Part shown: positions 10,002 through 64,000 of the stretch, piece after piece
How the letters are laid out: each line of letters begins with the position of its first letter
How positions within the stretch are numbered: position 1 is the stretch's first letter
Sequence record: NC_019538.1
Length of the DNA: 64,000 nucleotides
Reading direction: 5' to 3' (one strand)
Program-made: the position numbers and the translations under genes
The notes under the pieces: generated by a model
What the model was told of the DNA's origin: nothing
What the model saw: only the letters and a program-made list of their open reading frames with translations
The model's database searches: none

Positions 10002-10337
10002 TCAGCGGAACATTCGATTGTATTCAGCGTGGTAAAGTTCCAAGCTACGATCAAAAGCAGCTTTCTTTTCTTCTACATCCTTCCATAGAGCTTCAATGTT
10101 ATCCATGGACATGGCGGTGTCTTCAATAACATCAAAATACTTCATTTCACTTTCACGAATAAAAGCATAACAGTAATCAATCCGCAATAGTTCACCACCA
10201 TTGGATAGGAAGTAATCACCACCATCTGGAATTACTTCATGTGGTTCATTACCAATATGGTTTTCGATAACTTTATTAAACCGCTCAAGCTGGCGGAACT
10301 CGTGTCGGGATTGTTCATCTTTAAACTTAATCTTCAT
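10002..10337 (-). CDS. MKIRFK-family paralog with coiled-coil tail
   Basis: MKIKFKDEQSRHEF...IRESEMKYFDVIED, then KKAAFDRS tail. Confidence 0.8.
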   Translation of the reverse strand: MKIKFKDEQSRHEFRQLERFNKVIENHIGNEPHEVIPDGGDYFLSNGGELLRIDYCYAFIRESEMKYFDVIEDTAMSMDNIEALWKDVEEKKAAFDRSLELYHAEYNRMFR

Positions 10338-10587
10338 AACTCATCTCCAAATATTGAGTTTCATCTTTAAAGAAGCAAGCATTCCACCCATTCTCTGGAA
10401 CAGCTTTACCATAAGCATCCAAAACAATTCCATTGCCTTTGTTATCCACAAGTTTGATGCTTCCGTCAAAGTCCGTTTGTGCTTTATGGAACTCGTTACC
10501 CATGTATTCAGCGATAGACATATTAGCTCGTCCACCAGTGGTAAACGCGAACTTGGATTCGATATTTTTAAATCGTACTTTCATCAA
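10327..10587 (-). CDS. MKIRFK-family paralog
   Basis: MKVRFKN...ANMSIAEYMG. Confidence 0.8.
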   Translation of the reverse strand: MMKVRFKNIESKFAFTTGGRANMSIAEYMGNEFHKAQTDFDGSIKLVDNKGNGIVLDAYGKAVPENGWNACFFKDETQYLEMSYED

Positions 10588-10939
10588 GCTTCTCCATTAC
10601 TGCTTTGTTGTATTCAGTCATGGCTTTATCATACTCTGCTTTCTTCTGTTGTGCAATATCCCAGAGTTCTTTGATAGGTTTTTTCTTTTCAAGCGGGAGA
10701 ATATCCCATTCGAAAAATTTATACTCTGATGGAATAATAGAAGGACTAATACCACCGTTATCAATAACAATATCTTCGTTGTTCTTGTCTACCAGATACC
10801 ATCGATTCCCATCAAACGATACACGATTCCAATCCATACCCATATGGTTGGCGATGTGGGTGTTTGCGTTTACGCTATGAGCTATAAATCGACTCCGGTA
10901 CTCTTCACTGGGGAAACGGATAAGCATAATATCTGACAT
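10568..10939 (-). CDS. MKIRFK-family paralog with coiled-coil tail
   Basis: MLIRFPSEE...NTHIANHMGMD...KKAEYDKA. Confidence 0.8.
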   Translation of the reverse strand: MSDIMLIRFPSEEYRSRFIAHSVNANTHIANHMGMDWNRVSFDGNRWYLVDKNNEDIVIDNGGISPSIIPSEYKFFEWDILPLEKKKPIKELWDIAQQKKAEYDKAMTEYNKAVMEKLDESTI

Positions 10940-10942
10940 AAT

Positions 10943-11200
10943 TTATTCTCCTTTACTTGTTTGGACTTTACCATTGACGATGTAAACCTTGGGAATGAAA
11001 TCTACTTCCCCATCAATGTATACACAGAGGATACCTGAATCGTCTTCGTAAGTAAAGGCCAGATTTGAGCTGGTATTAGCAACTGACATCTTTACTTTGT
11101 GTCCGGTAGAGGAAAGATTCTCAATAGGGACAAAGAGGTTATGTTGTGGATTAGCATAACCTTTATCAACGAATGCATAATAGATAGTACGAATATCCAT
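10943..11200 (-). CDS. Hypothetical protein
   Basis: ORF with RBS. Confidence 0.7.
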   Translation of the reverse strand: MDIRTIYYAFVDKGYANPQHNLFVPIENLSSTGHKVKMSVANTSSNLAFTYEDDSGILCVYIDGEVDFIPKVYIVNGKVQTSKGE

Positions 11201-11279
11201 TTAAATTCCCCTTACCTAAGATTTTTGATAAGTCCCACCATCAGGACAAGTACCAATATACAGATACCCTCATCAACGG

Positions 11280-11576
11280 TCAACATTTTTCGCTAACCGA
11301 TTGGATATAGTCGTCAAAAGCCTTATCGTATTCGGCCTTCTTTTCTAACATGATATCGAAGAGAGTTTTGGGATCATCTTCAATCCAATCGAAGAAATCA
11401 CGTTCTGATTCAAGGATAAGAGTACAGTCGAGAATATCGGTTTCGATATAGTAATGTCCGTGAATTTTAACTACTTCAACCGGTCGCATTCTCATAAACT
11501 GTGCGATTTCCAAATTTTCTACTGAGGCTGATTTGAAATCGTTTAGGTGTTGTTCTGACTTGAAACGAATCTTCAT
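11280..11576 (-). CDS. MKIRFK-family paralog with coiled-coil tail
   Basis: Start set at 11576 (MKIRFKSEQ); KKAEYDKA tail. Confidence 0.8.
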   Translation of the reverse strand: MKIRFKSEQHLNDFKSASVENLEIAQFMRMRPVEVVKIHGHYYIETDILDCTLILESERDFFDWIEDDPKTLFDIMLEKKAEYDKAFDDYIQSVSEKC

Positions 11577-11577
11577 G

Positions 11578-11826
11578 TTATTCCCCTTCAATAATAAAGT
11601 AACGACGCTCGTTCATATGGATAAACGCATTCCACCCATCAAATCCAGAGATGTATGGATCTGGAATAATGACACCACAATTATTATCGTCTACCAGCCC
11701 AATATCCCCGTTGGAGTGGTTATACGCTTCGTGGGTATCCATTCCCATATAGTTTGCAATAGCAACGTTAGCACGACAATTAGAGAATTCCTGACGGGCT
11801 TGTTCTGACTTGAAACGGATTTTCAT
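11578..11826 (-). CDS. MKIRFK-family paralog
   Basis: MKIRFKSEQARQEF...ANVAIANYMGMDTH. Confidence 0.8.
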   Translation of the reverse strand: MKIRFKSEQARQEFSNCRANVAIANYMGMDTHEAYNHSNGDIGLVDDNNCGVIIPDPYISGFDGWNAFIHMNERRYFIIEGE

Positions 11827-11829
11827 AAT

Positions 11830-12042
11830 TTATTCCTCAATGATAGTGAAGTAATGGCTTTCGTCTTCGATATGGATAGTGAACTCACCACCAGCAGTAT
11901 CCCAGAATTCTCCTGTGTCGTCAATCTCTACTTTGAATGGATTCATACCAAACCGTTGAGCCATATTTTTATTGTGAGATGGAGAAACACCACTACAGCT
12001 AAATTCTTCCATTGCTTGCTCATCAACAAAACGGATTTTCAT
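11830..12042 (-). CDS. MKIRFK-family paralog
   Basis: MKIRFVDEQAMEEF...SHNKNMAQRFGMNPF; closest to 17363-17581. Confidence 0.8.
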   Translation of the reverse strand: MKIRFVDEQAMEEFSCSGVSPSHNKNMAQRFGMNPFKVEIDDTGEFWDTAGGEFTIHIEDESHYFTIIEE

Positions 12043-17362: not shown

Positions 17363-17581
17363 CTACGATGCAACAACTATTTCAAAATAAATTCCTTCAC
17401 CTGCTTTGTGAATAGTGAAATCACCGTCAACCGTATCCCACCACCAACCGGTTACATCAACCTCAACCTCGAAAGGGTTCATACCATAACGTAGAGTCAG
17501 ATCTTTATTATGGGAAGACCAACCAAGGTTGATACCCGCAAACTCGTTCATATGGTATTCGGATTTGAATTTGATTTTCAT
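17363..17581 (-). CDS. MKIRFK-family paralog
   Basis: MKIKFKSEYHMNEF...SHNKDLTLRYGMNPFEV. Confidence 0.8.
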   Translation of the reverse strand: MKIKFKSEYHMNEFAGINLGWSSHNKDLTLRYGMNPFEVEVDVTGWWWDTVDGDFTIHKAGEGIYFEIVVAS

Positions 17582-22261: not shown

Positions 22262-23350
22262 TCATTTATAAAGATGTTCTAAGATTACCTTAGCCATTTG
22301 GTCTTTGTCAAGCTTAATCAACTTGTTGTAAAGTCGTTTACCAACTTCTATTTCAGGAGTGTATCCTTTCTCCCTGATTGTGTCAATCAGTTCTGGGAGA
22401 ATTTTAATAATATCAATCCAGTTTTGAAGGATTTCTGTCGTACCATCAGCAAACTCGTCGGGTGTGATGATAGGATGCTCCATATCCTGCCTGTATGGCT
22501 TTGTGAGACGTTCTAACTCAGGTGGGATAGAACCATCCTCAAACTTGAATACAATTAGCTGCCGGGGCTTGTACGACGTTTTGTGAGCTTGTTGTTTTAT
22601 ACGTTGCTCTAGAAAGTTTGTGATACCAATCTTGAAAAACTCGTTGGTGTCTTTATCGTAGTTTATCCAGTTTGTTATGTAAAGGTGTCCGGGTTTAGCT
22701 GGTTGGTATCCGCGATCTGAACAAGAAGGACAACGACGACCACCATAAACGAAATTATCGTAAGAAACTATTTGTTTACCATGAACAGGACAATTGTATT
22801 CAAACTTAGATTCCGCGCTTCTATACTCATCAGGAAAACCTAGATATTCATATCCTTCAGTTTCACAAAGTTCTTTTGTAATTGTTTCAGCTTCTGGATT
22901 TCTACGCATATTGCTTAAATGTCCAAACTTACAAGAAGGACAACGGCTACCAGTATTAACGAAACTGTTGTATGAAACTAGTTGTTTACCATGAACAGGA
23001 CAGATGTATTCAAACTTAGAGTTCTTGTTTTTATATCCATCTGGAAACCAGATAAACCCATATCCCATTTCTTCACACAACCGACCAACAATAACTTCTA
23101 TCTGAAACGGTTTCAATTGTGGTTTCTTAGAACACCCACAAGGAACTTGACCTTTCACCAAGTCACTTTTTTGACTCTCAAACAAATCAGGAAATAATTC
23201 CTTATCTTCACTACAGATAGAACAAGTCAACTTATAAACTTTATTGTTCCCAGATCTTCTATCGGAAACACCAACAACAGTCAACATCCCACCTTTCGGA
23301 GTAGGAAAAGTTTGTCCAATGAAATCATCTACTGGGCACTGACCACACAT
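22262..23350 (-). mobile_element. Putative free-standing homing endonuclease: tandem Zn-binding repeats plus GIY-YIG-like domain
   Basis: Two ~70-aa repeats (FEY.CPVHGKQ.VSY..FV..G.RCPSC; 210-bp DNA period, e.g. ATGAACAGGA at 22781 and 22991); C-terminal LYI...FFKIGIT...RIKQ. Confidence 0.7.
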
Positions 23351-24210: not shown

Positions 24211-24942
24211 TTATTTCAAATTGTTAAAGTATCGAAGATGTTTGGGATTATCCACATCCACAGGACGAACTCGTTTACTCTTCTTCTGATCTACGTCGGT
24301 TACGTAAGTAAAGCCATCAACGACCATAATATTTTTCAGACGGTCGTCATGAGTACTACTTTCGAAATTAATGACGTTTGGAGATACATAGATGAACTTA
24401 TCCAGTTCACAGAAGATTGGATATCCCCCAGCATCTACAATCGCATCTACTGTATTATCAAACATACGTTCGACAATATTGTTAAACTCTTCTTTGTCGA
24501 TGATATCAGTTCTGTTATTGATAGCAGCATAGATAGAATTAACCATCATTCTTGAAATAATTTCATGGGATTTGCTAACACCACGAAACATTTCACGTAC
24601 TTGGTTTAGAGTATCGATCAGAACCTTTAGTTCTGTATTACACACGATAACCTCACCATAATGATTTTGAAGAATCTGGTTGAACATGTGACGGTAACTA
24701 GATTCCCAGATCTTGTTTTCTTTTCCTCCTACAATCAATCGACCTTTGCAACAAGTTGAGCGGATCGGAGTGTTTAGATGGTGAGATGGAACGTTGTGGG
24801 TCTTCACATCCTCAATATACAAAGGGGAATCAGAATTTCCGTAAAAGTGTTTCATCACCAAACTATATTCGTCTTTTCCAATATTGTTTACGAAACCACT
24901 ATCAACCAGTTCATTTACAAATTTAACAATTTTATCAAACAT
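24211..24942 (-). CDS. Degenerate family-B DNA polymerase palm/fingers-like protein, probably inactive
   Basis: Collinear remnants: WESSYRHM (motif A), RMMVNSIYA (motif B, KxxxNSxYG), IFCELDKF (motif C, YGDTDS). Confidence 0.5.
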   Translation of the reverse strand: MFDKIVKFVNELVDSGFVNNIGKDEYSLVMKHFYGNSDSPLYIEDVKTHNVPSHHLNTPIRSTCCKGRLIVGGKENKIWESSYRHMFNQILQNHYGEVIVCNTELKVLIDTLNQVREMFRGVSKSHEIISRMMVNSIYAAINNRTDIIDKEEFNNIVERMFDNTVDAIVDAGGYPIFCELDKFIYVSPNVINFESSTHDDRLKNIMVVDGFTYVTDVDQKKSKRVRPVDVDNPKHLRYFNNLK

Positions 24943-25007
24943 CTTTCATTTCCTCACTTAGTTTAGGTAAAGCCCAGTTGGAACACCCTATGGGCTATTT
25001 TCTTTTA

Positions 25008-25313
25008 TCAATCCAGAATATCGAAATCTACAATAATATCAAAGTAACCCATTTCTGATTTGTGAATACTACATGGAGACTGGTCGTCGTTGATAAGACC
25101 AACAACTTCCACCCAATCCCGTCGAATATATGGTGTTGGATTATCCGTGAAATCCATACCAATACTAAAATCCACATCGAATGGTTGAAGACCAAGACTA
25201 GCAATACGCTGTTTATATTTTTCGATGATGTCTTTAGAATCACCAGTCAAAATCGGGTTTACGGAATTAACATATTGATTGATACTTTCTTGACTTTTAA
25301 ATTTCATCTTCAT
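25008..25313 (-). CDS. MKIRFK-family paralog (divergent)
   Basis: MKFKSQESINQY...LGLQPFDV...SIHKSEMGYFDII. Confidence 0.7.
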   Translation of the reverse strand: MKMKFKSQESINQYVNSVNPILTGDSKDIIEKYKQRIASLGLQPFDVDFSIGMDFTDNPTPYIRRDWVEVVGLINDDQSPCSIHKSEMGYFDIIVDFDILD

Positions 25314-58363: not shown

Positions 58364-58585
58364 TTATACCCTCACCAAGAACTGTTTTTCATATTCGGTA
58401 ATGAAGAAATCTTGTCCACCCTTAGAGACCCAAAATCCACCCAAATCTTTATATGCTGGTTCGTCATGAACACGGAAAGGGTCTAGACCAACAATACCAA
58501 CGAACAGCAGGTTGTGTTGATCTGTACACGGCATTTCGGAAACAAATTGGTTCATAGCTTCTTCTGATTTGAACTTATACATCAT
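58364..58585 (-). CDS. MKIRFK-family paralog
   Basis: MMYKFKSEEAMNQF...HN...VGLDPFRV...ITEYEKQFL. Confidence 0.75.
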   Translation of the reverse strand: MMYKFKSEEAMNQFVSEMPCTDQHNLLFVGIVGLDPFRVHDEPAYKDLGGFWVSKGGQDFFITEYEKQFLVRV

Positions 58586-60132: not shown

Positions 60133-61659
60133 TTACAGACCAGCCAGCGCACGAGCTTGGATGTCTTTCCAGATTTGGAAGTTAACAATCTTACCATCAC
60201 GGAAAGCAATTTTCAGTTCGCCTTGGTTGAACTCATCGGCGGTTTGGTTCTCGAAAAGAACATAATCACCATCAACCTTCTCAACCCGCAGACGACCACG
60301 AGCTGACTTCTTACTGTTCAACGCGGTTTTCGGGTTCTTCTGCATGGAGATATCAATACCATCAACGATGGAGTGAGTACCCTTGATTGCGATAGAGAAG
60401 CTATCACGAGAGGAATTCTTGAGGAAACCCCAGCTGCCAGTACCCATCAGTACGTTGGAAACACACCAACCAGCAGCAGCCATACCAGCATAGATCTTCT
60501 CTTGCAGTTCACCGTCAATCGCTTCGCCGTAGATGATACCAACTTTCGGATTCAGAACACGGAAACCCTTCTCATTCACAGTACCGCCGAAGATATCCCA
60601 CAGGATTTGCAGAGACCCTTTACGCTCATTCTCATCTTCTGCCTCTGGGTCACCCATAATAACCTCATAAGGGGTCTTAGGAGAGCTATCGGGACGAACT
60701 ACGAACTTACACAGACCATTAGAATCCGGTTGACGACCTTCGATTTCGTCTTTCAGAGCCAGAAGGTCTACAGCCAACAGACGGTAATAATCTTCGCTAT
60801 CAGCAACGTAACTCAGAATCCCAGTCGGATAAGTTTCAGTAAACAGGCGACGCAGGCTTTCACGTTCTGCATGTTCGAAACCCAGACCACGGAAGTAAGC
60901 GATACGCTGGGTTGCAGTTGCATGTTCGAATGCGTTAACAGAACAACCGATCAGTTCCTCGTCGCTATTAGCACCATAATAGTCTTCAATGTAATCGATA
61001 GCCCAACCAGTGTCAGTACCAGCACTGAACAGAAGCTGACCCATACCGGAGATAGTAGAATCTTCGATACCACGATGACCCCGAGCAGCGAAACAGTGGT
61101 TTGCAATCAGAGCCCAGAAATCATTTGCACCGGTTACCGGAGCCCACTTGTTAGAGGTCTTGCGATATTGAGCGGATACTACGGCAGCATTACACATGGG
61201 CCATACCATTGCACTCAGGAAGGTTTCCATGTAGTTAACCAACCAGAAAAACTCTTTCAGGGTGTTGCTAACTACGAAAGCCGGGATACCCATATTGATC
61301 CAGTTGCCTTCTTCAATTGCACGAACTTCCAGAGGCAGATAACCCAGATCATGAAGGTCACCAAGAGCTTTAATCATGGAATCGCCGTGGTCTTTACCGA
61401 TGGAGTTTTTTACACGACGTTCAAACCGGCGAATAACTTTCTCTTTGGACTTTTTGAAGAAGTTTTGATCCCACATCTCAACCATATATTGTAGGGAGAA
61501 TTGCAGGCCAAAGAATACCATTTTACCGTTTTTATGGATGGTATTAGCCAGACGGTCAGAACGGGGTGTCAGGTTGGCGATTACCAGTTCGGTTCCATTA
61601 ACATACTGATCAATGTGACCCCATTTGTAGAAGTCGGAAGTCATATGCGGATATTTCAT
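60133..61659 (-). CDS. nadV: Nicotinamide phosphoribosyltransferase-family enzyme (NadV/Namat-like)
   Basis: SDFYK.GH..QY, FFGLQ, EHAT, S.VADSEDY, VVRPDSS, IIYGEAI, GSWGFL, K.P.T...KKSARGR. Confidence 0.9.
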   Translation of the reverse strand: MKYPHMTSDFYKWGHIDQYVNGTELVIANLTPRSDRLANTIHKNGKMVFFGLQFSLQYMVEMWDQNFFKKSKEKVIRRFERRVKNSIGKDHGDSMIKALGDLHDLGYLPLEVRAIEEGNWINMGIPAFVVSNTLKEFFWLVNYMETFLSAMVWPMCNAAVVSAQYRKTSNKWAPVTGANDFWALIANHCFAARGHRGIEDSTISGMGQLLFSAGTDTGWAIDYIEDYYGANSDEELIGCSVNAFEHATATQRIAYFRGLGFEHAERESLRRLFTETYPTGILSYVADSEDYYRLLAVDLLALKDEIEGRQPDSNGLCKFVVRPDSSPKTPYEVIMGDPEAEDENERKGSLQILWDIFGGTVNEKGFRVLNPKVGIIYGEAIDGELQEKIYAGMAAAGWCVSNVLMGTGSWGFLKNSSRDSFSIAIKGTHSIVDGIDISMQKNPKTALNSKKSARGRLRVEKVDGDYVLFENQTADEFNQGELKIAFRDGKIVNFQIWKDIQARALAGL

Positions 61660-61675
61660 TTTCTCATTTTCCTTA

Positions 61676-63427
61676 TTACATAATTTGAGTAAAGTATTTT
61701 TCTAACGTATCTTTTCTCATAGAATACGTTGTTTCTGTTTTAACGTCAACAAAATTTACAGAACCATCATCACAAATTTTACAAACCTGCCCATCCATCA
61801 CAAAATTATCAATCGCAGTAAGCCAACCGATGTTTCGATGGTCTCTCATAAATTCGACCCGATGTCTATCTGATTTGTAGTATATCGAGGTCACGTTAGG
61901 TTTAAAAGCAAATTTTTTGCGGTATTCATTGATGATTTTCGGGGTATCTTCAAATCCTACCATTCTGGTGAATTTACTAACAGGTTCCTCTTCAAACTGT
62001 TGAATATACTCTACCACGTCACCAAAGGAAAACAAAACGATTTTTTCTGATGAGTAACGATTTTTGATGAACACAAAAACACCATCTTTATAGTCAATCA
62101 CATAGCTACTTGACATGGTAAACCGGTCCAACCGACGACGTAGGTCCGCATAATCAGAAACATCCCCATCTGCGTTTTCCACCACATAAGGAACATTACC
62201 AATAAAATAAATTCTCATAAAACCAACCTTGTTCTTTGAATAACCAGATCGCCACCTTCCTTAAACTCTAGGTTTACAAGAATGCAATCACCTTCATCTT
62301 TGTAAGAATGTACCACCAAATCGGATAGATTATATCCAATGTTTTCGAGTGTGAGGTCGATTATTTTTGTCATAACCCGTCCGGGGGTTTGCCATTTTCC
62401 AATCATACAGTTTTAACCCACAAATGTTGATTATCTCGAACAAAACCATAAATTTTTTGTTCTACAGGAGACAAAGATAGACATCTTTCCATTTCTTCAT
62501 CTGACCACATAAGTTCCATGTCAACATTAATACCACGGATTACAATTTTGTGGATATCAATATAAGTTTTCTTTGTCCGTTTGTGTTCGTTCATAATATG
62601 TGCAAAAGCATCACATAGATATTTCATATCAATAGATGTCATATTATTTCTCCTTATTAGGTATGTGGATCATAACACGGGATCTACAATTTGGGCAAGA
62701 GTAAGTTTTCTTTTTTAATGAGTCATTATAGACCCACTTTGCAGTTACCATACTATATTCATGACGGCAACCATAGCAAATAAACTTGGTATCTCCCCAA
62801 TGTTCCTTATACCATTTGTCATCCATCAAAATTTGTTCCCATCACAGTCAATACGAAGAGATTCACTTTTTCCGAACTTTCGTTCCCCACAAATAAACCC
62901 TGCCCGTTTCGCTCGACAACTACCAAGACTCTGTTTATGAATGATACGTCCAATGAATTCATCCATATGGTCATGGTTTACCAGCTTAGAGAAAACTACG
63001 GTCAAAACTTTACCATCTTTAAGATCATACTCGATGAATTTATGGTCACCGATAGTATCCCGACCAATATCAATGATTTCGATATCATTTTCTTCCGAAC
63101 GGAACCAATCATGATATCGATCGAACATCCGGATCCGGTGTACCTTTTCCACTTCATCCATTGGAATTTCACCAATAATCTTGATGGTGATAGGTTGATA
63201 TGATTCGTGACAGTCTTCTTTCTTCAATACATATGTAATTGAATTGATCATTTCTTTTCTCCAAAACAGAGAGTACCGATAGCCAGATTATGAACGAGAT
63301 TCTTGATCTCTTCTTCGTTCATCCCATTCGCCTTTTCCCGCATCAACATTTCCTGAACAGATTGGTTAGCCAGAAGTTCATCGATACGGGAGTTAATGAA
63401 TTGGGTCATAGTTTCGATACTCATCAT
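61676..63427 (-). CDS. Six small genes between nadV and prs: 61676-62218, 62215-62406, 62403-62642, 62644-62829 (CxxC...CPNC Zn ribbon), 62826-63251, 63248-63427
   Basis: Abutting ORFs with ATGA overlaps. Confidence 0.7.
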
Positions 63428-63437
63428 GTTTAGTTCC

Positions 63438-64000
63438 TTATTTTGTCCAGTCGAAACGAGTATATACGTTGTCGATGTACTGTGCAAGGTTTTCTTTGGC
63501 GTTGTAAGAAAAAATTCCATGGGTAACAAACAGGTCCACTCGAACCGCACCAGACTCTTTCAATACTTTACCAAGATTGAGGAAAGAACGACCACCATCA
63601 CAAATATCGTCTACGATCAACAACCGCTTACCTTTGACGTCAGAATTGAAACGAGGTTCGCTAACTTCACCAGTGTTGATATCGCGAGTCTTCATGGCTT
63701 CAATTACTGGAAGACCCGCATTTTGAGCTTGGGGATAGATCTTTTTCAGAGCACCCGCATCCGGGGATACAATCGCGTCATAATTACGACGGGAAATCCC
63801 TTGAGAACCCCAACACCACTGTTTGTTAACAGATACGTTATTGATCAATGCGGTTGATACATCGGAATGTGGATCTGTGAGACAAACCAAATCATATTTC
63901 ATAGAGTTGATGAAATCACAAAAGACACGCAAAGACAGGCTTTCACCTTCTGTCATAACTCGGTCTTGTCGAGCATAAGGGAGATAGGACAGGTCCAAAA
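63438..64000 (-). CDS. prs: Ribose-phosphate pyrophosphokinase-family enzyme (Prs/Adps-like), 5' part outside the window
   Basis: LPYARQDRV, DPHS, VSPDAGA, LIVDDICDGGRSF, LFVTHGIFS; frame open to the edge. Confidence 0.9.
   Translation of the reverse strand, partial: LDLSYLPYARQDRVMTEGESLSLRVFCDFINSMKYDLVCLTDPHSDVSTALINNVSVNKQWCWGSQGISRRNYDAIVSPDAGALKKIYPQAQNAGLPVIEAMKTRDINTGEVSEPRFNSDVKGKRLLIVDDICDGGRSFLNLGKVLKESGAVRVDLFVTHGIFSYNAKENLAQYIDNVYTRFDWTK

Follow-up and report, generated by a model that had tools for sequence, protein, structure and literature searches.

Introduction

Several derivatives of family-B DNA polymerases (PolBs) have been described that lack the catalytic carboxylates and have been retained for another role. 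The herpesvirus helicase-primase subunit UL8 is an inactivated PolB according to Kazlauskas and Venclovas (2014), as cited in PMC4889955, the chordopoxvirus protein F12 is an exapted, inactivated viral PolB (PMC4304020), and the C-terminal half of Pol epsilon is an inactivated PolB derivative (PMC7308368). All three show the full multi-domain architecture of a PolB (600–1200 aa). As a rule, the nucleotide-binding motifs are also gone in known inactivated PolBs. A published inactivated PolB from a tailed phage, or one of about 250 aa with palm-plus-fingers size, was not found in the literature.

The protein gp224 of Aeromonas phage CC2 resembles these proteins in combining a predicted PolB-derived fold with the loss of an essential carboxylate and with selection (dN/dS 0.25). 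It differs from them in its size, since it has only 243 aa and would consist of palm and fingers, and it is set apart by its origin in a tailed phage and by the retention of nucleotide-binding residues. With active PolBs (RB69/T4 gp43, Pol II, archaeal PolB and Pol alpha), gp224 shares a palm and fingers region in which motifs A, B and C follow in the same order. The distance between motifs A and B is about 50–77 aa in the gp224 family and 74 aa in Pol II, and that between motifs B and C is about 50 aa against 54 aa. The family also keeps the R..K pair of helix N, the K..N..Y of motif B, the sugar-gate aromatic residue and, in motif C, the second Asp. In contrast to these enzymes, gp224 has about one third of the size, lacks the N-terminal, exonuclease and thumb domains and stays below every curated sequence-family threshold; the Asp of motif A is replaced by S/C/G/T in the family, and neither the first Asp of motif C nor the Gly of motif B is conserved.

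The split gp43A/gp43B replicase of Aeromonas T4-like phages comes from the same lineage and is divided between the two fingers helices, in the region that gp224 resembles. However, gp43A and gp43B are bona fide replicase halves with all catalytic residues, and gp224 has no close sequence relation to them (hhalign probability about 1–3%). Models and alignments together show that the gp224 gene is conserved and under selection, and that its product carries the predicted palm-plus-fingers fold of a PolB without the motif A carboxylate. The protein is most probably a PolB relic that has been put to another use and no longer polymerises. No published description of the gp224 family was found in the literature.

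The gp224 Gene and Its Domain Layout

The window, a stretch of 64,000 nucleotides, comprises positions 1–64000 of NC_019538.1, the record of Aeromonas phage CC2, a 232-kb T4-like phage that is annotated as a member of Straboviridae, Emmerichvirinae, Ceceduovirus. An ORF had been predicted at 24211..24942 and is real: on the minus strand, with an ATG start and 243 aa, it coincides in the ORF listing and in the record with the annotated CDS F485_gp224 (YP_007010097.1). The product is labelled "hypothetical protein" in the record because first-pass sequence searches are silent on it. The features of the gene and of its product are collected in Table 1.

Table 1. Features of the gp224 gene and of the encoded protein in the window (aa, residues of gp224).
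Feature	Coordinates	Strand	Evidence
Complete ORF F485_gp224 (243 codons + stop), mini PolB-like protein, PHROG 7204 member	24211..24942	-	dN/dS 0.25
Shine-Dalgarno-like GAGGA, 8 nt 5' of the ATG	24951..24955	-	direct sequence reading
aa 1-35, confident three-helix N-terminal region (pLDDT 85-95), no PolB counterpart assigned	24838..24942	-	model
aa 36-76, poorly conserved linker, largely low confidence (pLDDT <50 at 53-69)	24715..24837	-	alignment, model
aa 77-95, counterpart of motif A (strand 77-83, helix 86-95); S82 at the catalytic Asp site, F87 at the sugar-gate Tyr site	24658..24714	-	
aa 105-142, helical hairpin of the fingers, with R116/R120 on the helix N equivalent and R131, N135, S136, Y138 on the helix P/motif B equivalent	24517..24630	-	
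aa 150-170, long palm helix running into motif C	24433..24495	-	model, hhalign
aa 172-187, beta-hairpin of motif C, GGYPIFCELDKFIYVS; turn occupied by the invariant D181, E179 at the first Asp site	24382..24429	-	
aa 193-224, beta region at the C-terminal end, holding the invariant H198 and, in Aeromonas members, D200	24271..24366	-	
aa 225-243 + stop, basic low-confidence tail, far below thumb size	24211..24270	-	

The gene belongs to a long series of small genes pointing leftward, which we take, by analogy with the gene organisation of T4-like phages, to be putative early accessory (host-takeover) genes. In both CC2 and phage 65, the gene of this family sits within the large early region. 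It is also, as had been expected, separate from gp43. The actual replicase of CC2 comes in two parts, gp43A and gp43B, encoded at 101–104 kb, 77 kb from gp224, and these two proteins carry all the canonical motifs (SFDLTSLYPHEI, KKVLINSLYG, YCDTDS and AKKRYAL), with motifs B and C on gp43B.

Only 76 residues precede motif A in gp224, compared with 418 in Pol II, and 62 follow motif C, compared with 236. Flanks of this length leave no place for an N-terminal, exonuclease or thumb domain, which bears out the original prediction of a protein with no exonuclease and no full thumb; a match of gp224 to an exonuclease family was likewise missing in Pfam and PHROGs. The tip of the fingers hairpin is about 22 aa shorter in CC2 gp224 than in most relatives. 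The members have a near-neutral pI (6.2–9.1), which together with the missing thumb makes DNA binding by gp224 doubtful.

Predicted Fold and Structural Matches

The AlphaFold2 alignments were shallow, and the model of CC2 gp224, built from eight sequences, reached a moderate confidence (pLDDT 75.3, pTM 0.68). Its elements follow in the order of a strand (77–83), a helix (86–95), a helical hairpin (105–118/124–142), a long helix (150–170) and a beta-hairpin (174–179/182–187) with D181 at the turn, after which come four short strands. The motif strings had been read as a polymerase core in PolB order, and in the model they do sit on the secondary-structure elements expected for a palm and fingers. 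In a Foldseek search of the PDB, family-B DNA polymerases made up all of the top 50 hits (best E 1.6e-3, probabilities 0.8–1.0), including yeast and human Pol alpha, the PolBs of Thermococcus, Pyrococcus and Sulfolobus, E. coli Pol II, Pol epsilon and the HSV-1 polymerase. The query-normalised TM-scores against PolBs were only 0.32–0.46, and the Foldseek E-values were marginal (about 1e-3).

The relative P0005, which is 27% identical to CC2 gp224 and has a longer fingers hairpin, was folded as a replicate. Its model (pLDDT 81.6, pTM 0.78) again had PolBs as 50 of its top 50 hits in the PDB, the best being Sulfolobus PolB1 (E = 5.3e-4), and across both models the matches also include Pol zeta and the ASFV polymerase. 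The structural match to a PolB palm that had been foreseen for this protein is thus found with two models.

In the viral library BFVD, the CC2 model matched first the independently built models of its relatives in phage 65.2 (TMq 0.78), phiAS4 (0.66) and Klebsiella phage PMBT1 (0.59). These were followed by small proteins of T4-like phages, and then by PolBs of crAss-like phages and siphoviruses and by several herpesvirus UL8 helicase-primase subunits. T4-type gp43 was missing from the best structural matches of the CC2 model, which argues against gp224 being a recent duplicate of the polymerase of its phage.

Sequence Searches for a Link to PolBs

Standard profile searches for a link to PolBs were silent. 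In Pfam, no credible family of any kind was matched, with DNA_pol_B missing at E <= 10 for CC2 gp224 and at E <= 1 for eight members; PADLOC matched nothing; and neither phmmer with gp224 nor hmmsearch with the family profiles found a polymerase chain among all PDB sequences, even at E <= 10. This silence is the chief evidence against strong claims about gp224. The PDB matches that did appear, namely the de novo designed repeat 8eoz (E = 1.4e-5), C3larvin (0.47) and PBP1b (about 0.15), were rejected as short helical or compositional similarities.

Profile comparisons gave a signal. With hhalign, the 18-sequence family profile and the single E. coli Pol II sequence formed one collinear alignment of 110 columns through motifs A, B and C, spanning positions 72–194 of the family and 410–548 of Pol II. 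The raw statistics were weak (score about 25.6–25.7, P = 0.017), and Pol II scored above all of 120 shuffles of its core (13.1 +/- 2.5, maximum 23.2). In a ranking of 110 natural ORF products (150 aa or longer) taken from the analysed loci as control proteins, Pol II came first and CC2 gp43B second, with the 108 unrelated controls below them. Against the single-sequence templates CC2 gp43A, gp43B and Pol II, the hhalign probability was only 1–3%. When gp43B alone was compared with the family profile, the best segment was motif B.

The same motif was found from the side of the PHROGs. P0005 matched phrog_262 (E = 4.9e-4) with motif B in the correct register; mapping gp43A and gp43B onto this profile identified it as the gp43/PolB family, and the match of P0005 stops exactly at the Gly of motif B. 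Four of 15 members touch phrog_262, which is the sole functionally annotated family matched by more than one member. The PolB signal in the sequence can thus be called weak but specific, and the motif pattern in gp224 is, to judge from the alignments and models, more than chance.

Active-Site Residues

The motif strings lie exactly where they had been reported, WESSYRHM at residues 79–86, LKVLIDTLNQVREMFR at 104–119, RMMVNSIYA at 131–139 and GGYPIFCELDKFIY at 172–185, and these remnants are conserved among homologs, as had been proposed, being kept across the superfamily down to 12–16% identity. Some distant relatives are equally or even more PolB-like, with KAILNCIYG, MFPTIL and, in the sister family (Miller), FRFLYPNCII. 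The residue comparison below covers 18 members from T4-like phages of Aeromonas, Klebsiella and Citrobacter, and the roles of the RB69 PolB residues D411, Y416, R482, K486, K560, N564, Y567, D621 and D623 are taken from PMC3564110.

For motif A, the loss of the Asp stands in either register, while the register in which W79 takes the place of the Asp is three residues off. Profile comparisons align S82-Y83-R84-H85-M86-F87-N88-Q89-I90-L91 with D-F-x-S-L-Y-P-S-I-I, so that S82 of CC2 falls at the position of RB69 D411. This position is S/C/G/T in all 18 members and acidic in none. E80, on the same strand two residues before S82, is acidic in 10 of 18 members and is V/I in the Miller/KP15 branch. 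F87 takes the position of the sugar-gate Tyr (RB69 Y416), where every member has an aromatic residue.

The basic residues of the fingers are kept without exception: R116 of helix N (= R482) is present in 18/18 members, as is K/R at position 120 (= K486) and K/R at position 131 of motif B (= K560). Also in motif B, N135 (= N564) occurs in 15/18 members and an aromatic residue at position 138 (= Y567) in 18/18, while the Gly of the motif is not kept in the family. In motif C, the second Asp had been described as kept, and D181 (= RB69 D623) is indeed invariant (18/18). At the position of the first Asp (D621), an acidic residue, E179 in CC2, is confined to the CC2/65 clade, and 13/18 members are non-acidic there.

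In total, 22 of the 243 positions are class-invariant, and among these are 6 of 10 PolB active-site equivalents (hypergeometric P = 4.6e-5; within the core 1.1e-3), a test that is partly circular because the conserved residues themselves help to drive the alignment with Pol II. H198 is likewise invariant (18/18), a family-specific residue with no assigned PolB counterpart, and D200 occurs in 14/18 members, those of Aeromonas phages, with K/R in the Miller/KP15 branch. The C-terminal beta region that holds H198 gave no significant alignment with the acidic strand of PolBs or with the KKRY region of Pol II and gp43B.

Family Membership, Spread and Selection

Over its full length (residues 12–243 against positions 1–247 of 252), gp224 matches phrog_7204 (E = 2.6e-90), a family with no assigned function. 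By tblastn, the gene of this family is present in 62 phage records, all from T4-like Aeromonas phages and "Stenotrophomonas" phage IME13, with identities down to about 24%. When 1.84 billion cluster representatives were searched exhaustively with the profile, only six genuine clusters emerged, and a further word-indexed search with a diverse alignment found no additional members. P0009 and P0010 were rejected as members, being Ig-like/NHL-type repeat proteins with spurious additive scores.

The divergent metagenomic member P0008 forms a bridge to a protein of Citrobacter phage Miller (298 aa, phrog_7439), which the family profile matches with an hhalign probability of 97.6% (E = 2.7e-12). As far as profile comparison goes, phrog_7439 is a demonstrable sister family of phrog_7204. 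Its phages include Citrobacter phage Miller, Klebsiella phages KP15, Miro and PMBT1, RB43 and phages of Cronobacter and Enterobacter. In tblastn searches it was found in about 215 more T4-like records, from Klebsiella (Slopekvirus), Enterobacter, Cronobacter, Citrobacter, Escherichia (RB43 type) and Vibrio. The proteins of the whole family are about 245–300 aa long, gp224 itself having 243 aa, and divergence across the superfamily reaches 12–16% identity.

Comparison of CC2 gp224 with its AS-zj-type ortholog gave a dN/dS of 0.25, which indicates that the gene is under purifying selection. In avDM6, the gene is present as two overlapping ORFs with the break at a T5 run, and fragments of 109–156 aa are on database record. 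An apparent pseudogene in Assk was rejected, since the gene is interrupted there by a run of Ns left from assembly, in a record marked UNVERIFIED.

Some GenBank entries from Slopekvirus are named "DNA polymerase" or "DNA polymerase delta catalytic subunit". As these labels come from several submitters, annotation pipelines have noticed the PolB likeness already; judged by the residues, the labels overstate what the Slopekvirus members could do.

Possible Function of gp224

To judge from the fold and profile comparisons, the gp224 protein descends from a family-B DNA polymerase that was trimmed to its palm and fingers subdomains. The Asp of motif A is one of the two PolB carboxylates that hold the catalytic metals. 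Since it is replaced in every member, we infer that canonical two-metal templated DNA synthesis would be beyond gp224, and the earlier description of the protein as catalytically dead can be read from the residues in this limited sense. Selection has nevertheless kept the equivalents of the residues that in PolBs clamp the triphosphate and the sugar of the nucleotide coming in (R116, R120, R131, N135, Y138, F87 and D181), and a new invariant His, H198, has been added in the family. With the nucleotide triphosphate and sugar pocket maintained by selection, the simplest account is that gp224 binds a nucleotide and does not polymerise, and we give it about an even chance. Under this reading, gp224 would be a binding module for a dNTP/NTP-like ligand, possibly with one metal, and not a polymerase; it would be expressed together with the neighbouring leftward accessory genes and would assist, as an accessory protein, in the metabolism of nucleotides, the control of replication or the conflict with the host. 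Of the roles suggested for the protein in the original prediction, the conservation pattern favours putative nucleotide binding over a pure decoy.

Two other explanations deny that gp224 is a functional PolB derivative. The PolB likeness could be non-homologous, arising from a convergent strand-helix-hairpin-hairpin layout or from a bias of AlphaFold towards motif-like strings, and the empty Pfam and PDB HMMER profile searches, TM-scores below 0.5 and shallow folding alignments would agree with this. It is nevertheless a very unlikely account, given that two targets with 27% identity each had PolBs as 50 of 50 top hits, that the independent BFVD models of the relatives superpose (TMq 0.59–0.78), that the sequence-level signals are in the correct register, and that the three motifs and the basic pair of helix N are collinear with correct spacing. 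That gp224 is a decaying gene fragment without function is more improbable still, to the point of being hardly credible. The broken gene of avDM6 and the short database fragments are what such decay would leave, whereas most of the 62 Aeromonas-phage and about 215 other T4-like records found by tblastn carry the gene at full length, the dN/dS is 0.25, specific residues stay invariant over deep divergence, and the "break" in Assk is only an assembly gap of Ns.

The remaining explanations accept the homology and differ in what the fold would do. A purely structural, ligand-free pseudo-polymerase, acting as a scaffold or mimic, for instance as an accessory subunit of the replisome like UL8, or as a decoy or competitor directed at a defence sensor or host factor that responds to PolB-like surfaces, has precedents among exapted inactivated viral PolBs in poxvirus F12 and, as far as the cited description of UL8 goes, in that protein too. 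The position of the gene among small leftward genes, taken by T4 analogy as accessory host-takeover genes, would fit this role, as would its absence from many T4-like genera, which also argues against a core replisome component, and the splitting of gp43 in CC2 and several carriers with the junction inside the region that gp224 mimics. Yet for a scaffold or decoy the exact R..K / K..N..Y / D set of nucleotide contacts would be superfluous, and these are the most conserved polar residues; in addition, phages of Pseudotevenvirus and Slopekvirus carry the sister family, whereas the gp43 split was seen in CC2 and several carriers. We therefore regard a ligand-free role as distinctly unlikely. The opposite possibility is that gp224 has remained an enzyme and works as a minimal, non-canonical nucleotidyltransferase in which D181 and H198 (with D200 or E80 in Aeromonas members) would replace the motif A Asp; possible reactions are the untemplated addition of nucleotides and the synthesis or hydrolysis of a nucleotide-derived molecule. 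Because the nucleotide-binding residues are usually gone in known inactivated PolBs, their retention in gp224 could instead mean residual catalysis, and the preservation of all triphosphate-contacting residues and one metal ligand across 12–16% identity would be unusual for a dead polymerase. H198 (18/18) and D200 (14/18) are well conserved, the start of the H198 strand could adjoin the end of the motif A strand if the predicted strand order forms the usual antiparallel palm sheet, and enzymes that act on nucleotides or RNA ends abound in the neighbourhoods of the relatives. Against an enzyme speak the single carboxylate that is invariant superfamily-wide, with D200 changed to K/R and E80 to V/I in the Miller/KP15 branch, the want of a thumb to hold a primer, and C-terminal strands that cannot be aligned to PolB; on balance catalysis appears unlikely.

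The boldest form of this proposal, that gp224 is the smallest working PolB derivative, a thumb-less palm-fingers enzyme in which H198 on a neighbouring strand would replace the motif A Asp for a non-replicative nucleotide reaction, is in our view improbable. If it were true, gp224 might carry out untemplated tailing, or might make, cap or sequester a nucleotide-derived molecule, for control of the nucleotide pool or against host defence.

The consequences are of several kinds. Two PHROGs with no assigned function (7204 and 7439) gain a structural identity that reaches the Klebsiella slopekviruses, which are therapeutic candidates, and the misleading "DNA polymerase" label on some members in GenBank is corrected. 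The family offers a natural minimal nucleotide-binding module of PolB origin, in which palm and fingers can be studied without thumb and exonuclease. If gp224 does bind or transform nucleotides, it would represent a new type of player in phage nucleotide-pool control or host conflict.

Genomic Neighbourhood in Relatives

In phages 25, 31 and those of the 44RR and avDM14 types, the family gene is located between hoc and gene 24, and genes of the sister family have the same hoc-rnlB-24 surroundings. The neighbours in the genomes of relatives include TK, dNMP nucleotidases, an HD phosphohydrolase, RnlB and an Arr-like ART. The Arr-like gene was considered as a dedicated partner, and an obligate link was rejected, since 610 phage records, including RB69, carry it without the PolB-like gene; it is missing from the first 114 kb of CC2. 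In phages 25, 31 and avDM14, in Miller and VAC66 and on the contig of P0008, the Arr-like gene is strongly conserved and lies just downstream.

Polymerase Genes and Polymerase Names

The replicative polymerase of Aeromonas phage CC2 is itself encoded by a split gene 43, of which gp43A (506 aa) comprises the exonuclease together with motif A and the first of the two fingers helices; motif B, motif C and the thumb belong to gp43B (391 aa). The junction of the two cistrons lies between the two fingers helices, within the region mimicked by the PolB-like protein gp224. A separate gene annotated as a DNA polymerase exonuclease subunit adjoins rIIB and is distant from gene 43. In some GenBank records, the 291-aa protein of the sister family (phrog_7439) bears the product name "DNA polymerase" or "DNA polymerase delta catalytic subunit", which is misleading because the motif A Asp, the exonuclease and the thumb are missing.

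Features discussed in this section (L006, L013, L014, L015, L019, L020 and L021 denote loci; L013 is CC2 outside the window)
Feature	Position	Strand	Remark
Short stem-loop AGCCCA ... TGGGCT	window 24971-24996	-	
goF mRNA metabolism modulator genes	window 10002-12042, 17363-17581, 25008-25313, 58364-58585		annotation
gp224 ortholog, Aeromonas phage avDM6	L020:201-930		two overlapping annotated ORFs
gp224 ortholog, phage Assk	L019:201-933		two overlapping annotated ORFs
105-112 aa protein gene	L006:3123-3461, L014:4700-5017, L015:2409-2726, L021:3848-4186		outside CC2 window
Split gene 43 (gp43A + gp43B)	NC_019538.1 101368-104060 (L013:37368-40060)		outside window
DNA polymerase exonuclease subunit, 317 aa	NC_019538.1 85671-86624 (L013:21671-22624)		annotation
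Sister-family protein, 291 aa	MZ612130.1 42510-43385		also in other Slopekvirus records
Endonuclease, 362 aa	window 22262-23350	-	two genes downstream of gp224
Nicotinamide phosphoribosyltransferase and ribose-phosphate pyrophosphokinase genes	window 60133-64000	-	record annotation

Apparently Interrupted Orthologs

Two orthologs of gp224 are interrupted as annotated. The interruption in Assk is an artefact, since it consists of a run of N in a record marked UNVERIFIED. In the avDM6 ortholog the reading frame shifts at a T5 homopolymer located between motif B and motif C, reflecting either a true disruption or a sequencing error; the database fragment P0004 is the N-terminal piece of this ortholog.

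Neighboring Genes

The gene directly upstream of gp224 is gp223, annotated as goF-like. The 65-nt gap between them contains a stem-loop, about 30 nt 5' of the gp224 start codon, which has no T-run and is therefore not a typical terminator. At least seven small genes of the window carry the goF annotation, which suggests that either the paralog family is large or the annotation is applied promiscuously.

In Aeromonas phages 25, 31 and avDM14, Citrobacter Miller, Klebsiella VAC66 and one metagenomic contig, a gene for a 105-112 aa protein is located directly 3' of the PolB-like gene. Its product, labeled as (rifampin) ADP-ribosyltransferase in some records, shows 67-86% identity among these lineages, a conservation far above that of the PolB-like gene. 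T4-like phages carry this protein in 610 records, one of which is RB69, where its gene adjoins dmd. It had no match in Pfam, and no copy turned up within the first 114 kb of CC2.

Downstream of gp224, the annotated endonuclease carries a Cys-rich module in two internal copies (FEY.CPVHGKQ.VSY..FV..G.RCPSC); a GIY-YIG-like segment comes next, and the protein looks like a free-standing homing endonuclease. Elsewhere in the window, the adjoining nicotinamide phosphoribosyltransferase and ribose-phosphate pyrophosphokinase genes constitute, according to the record annotation, a phage NAD+ salvage module.
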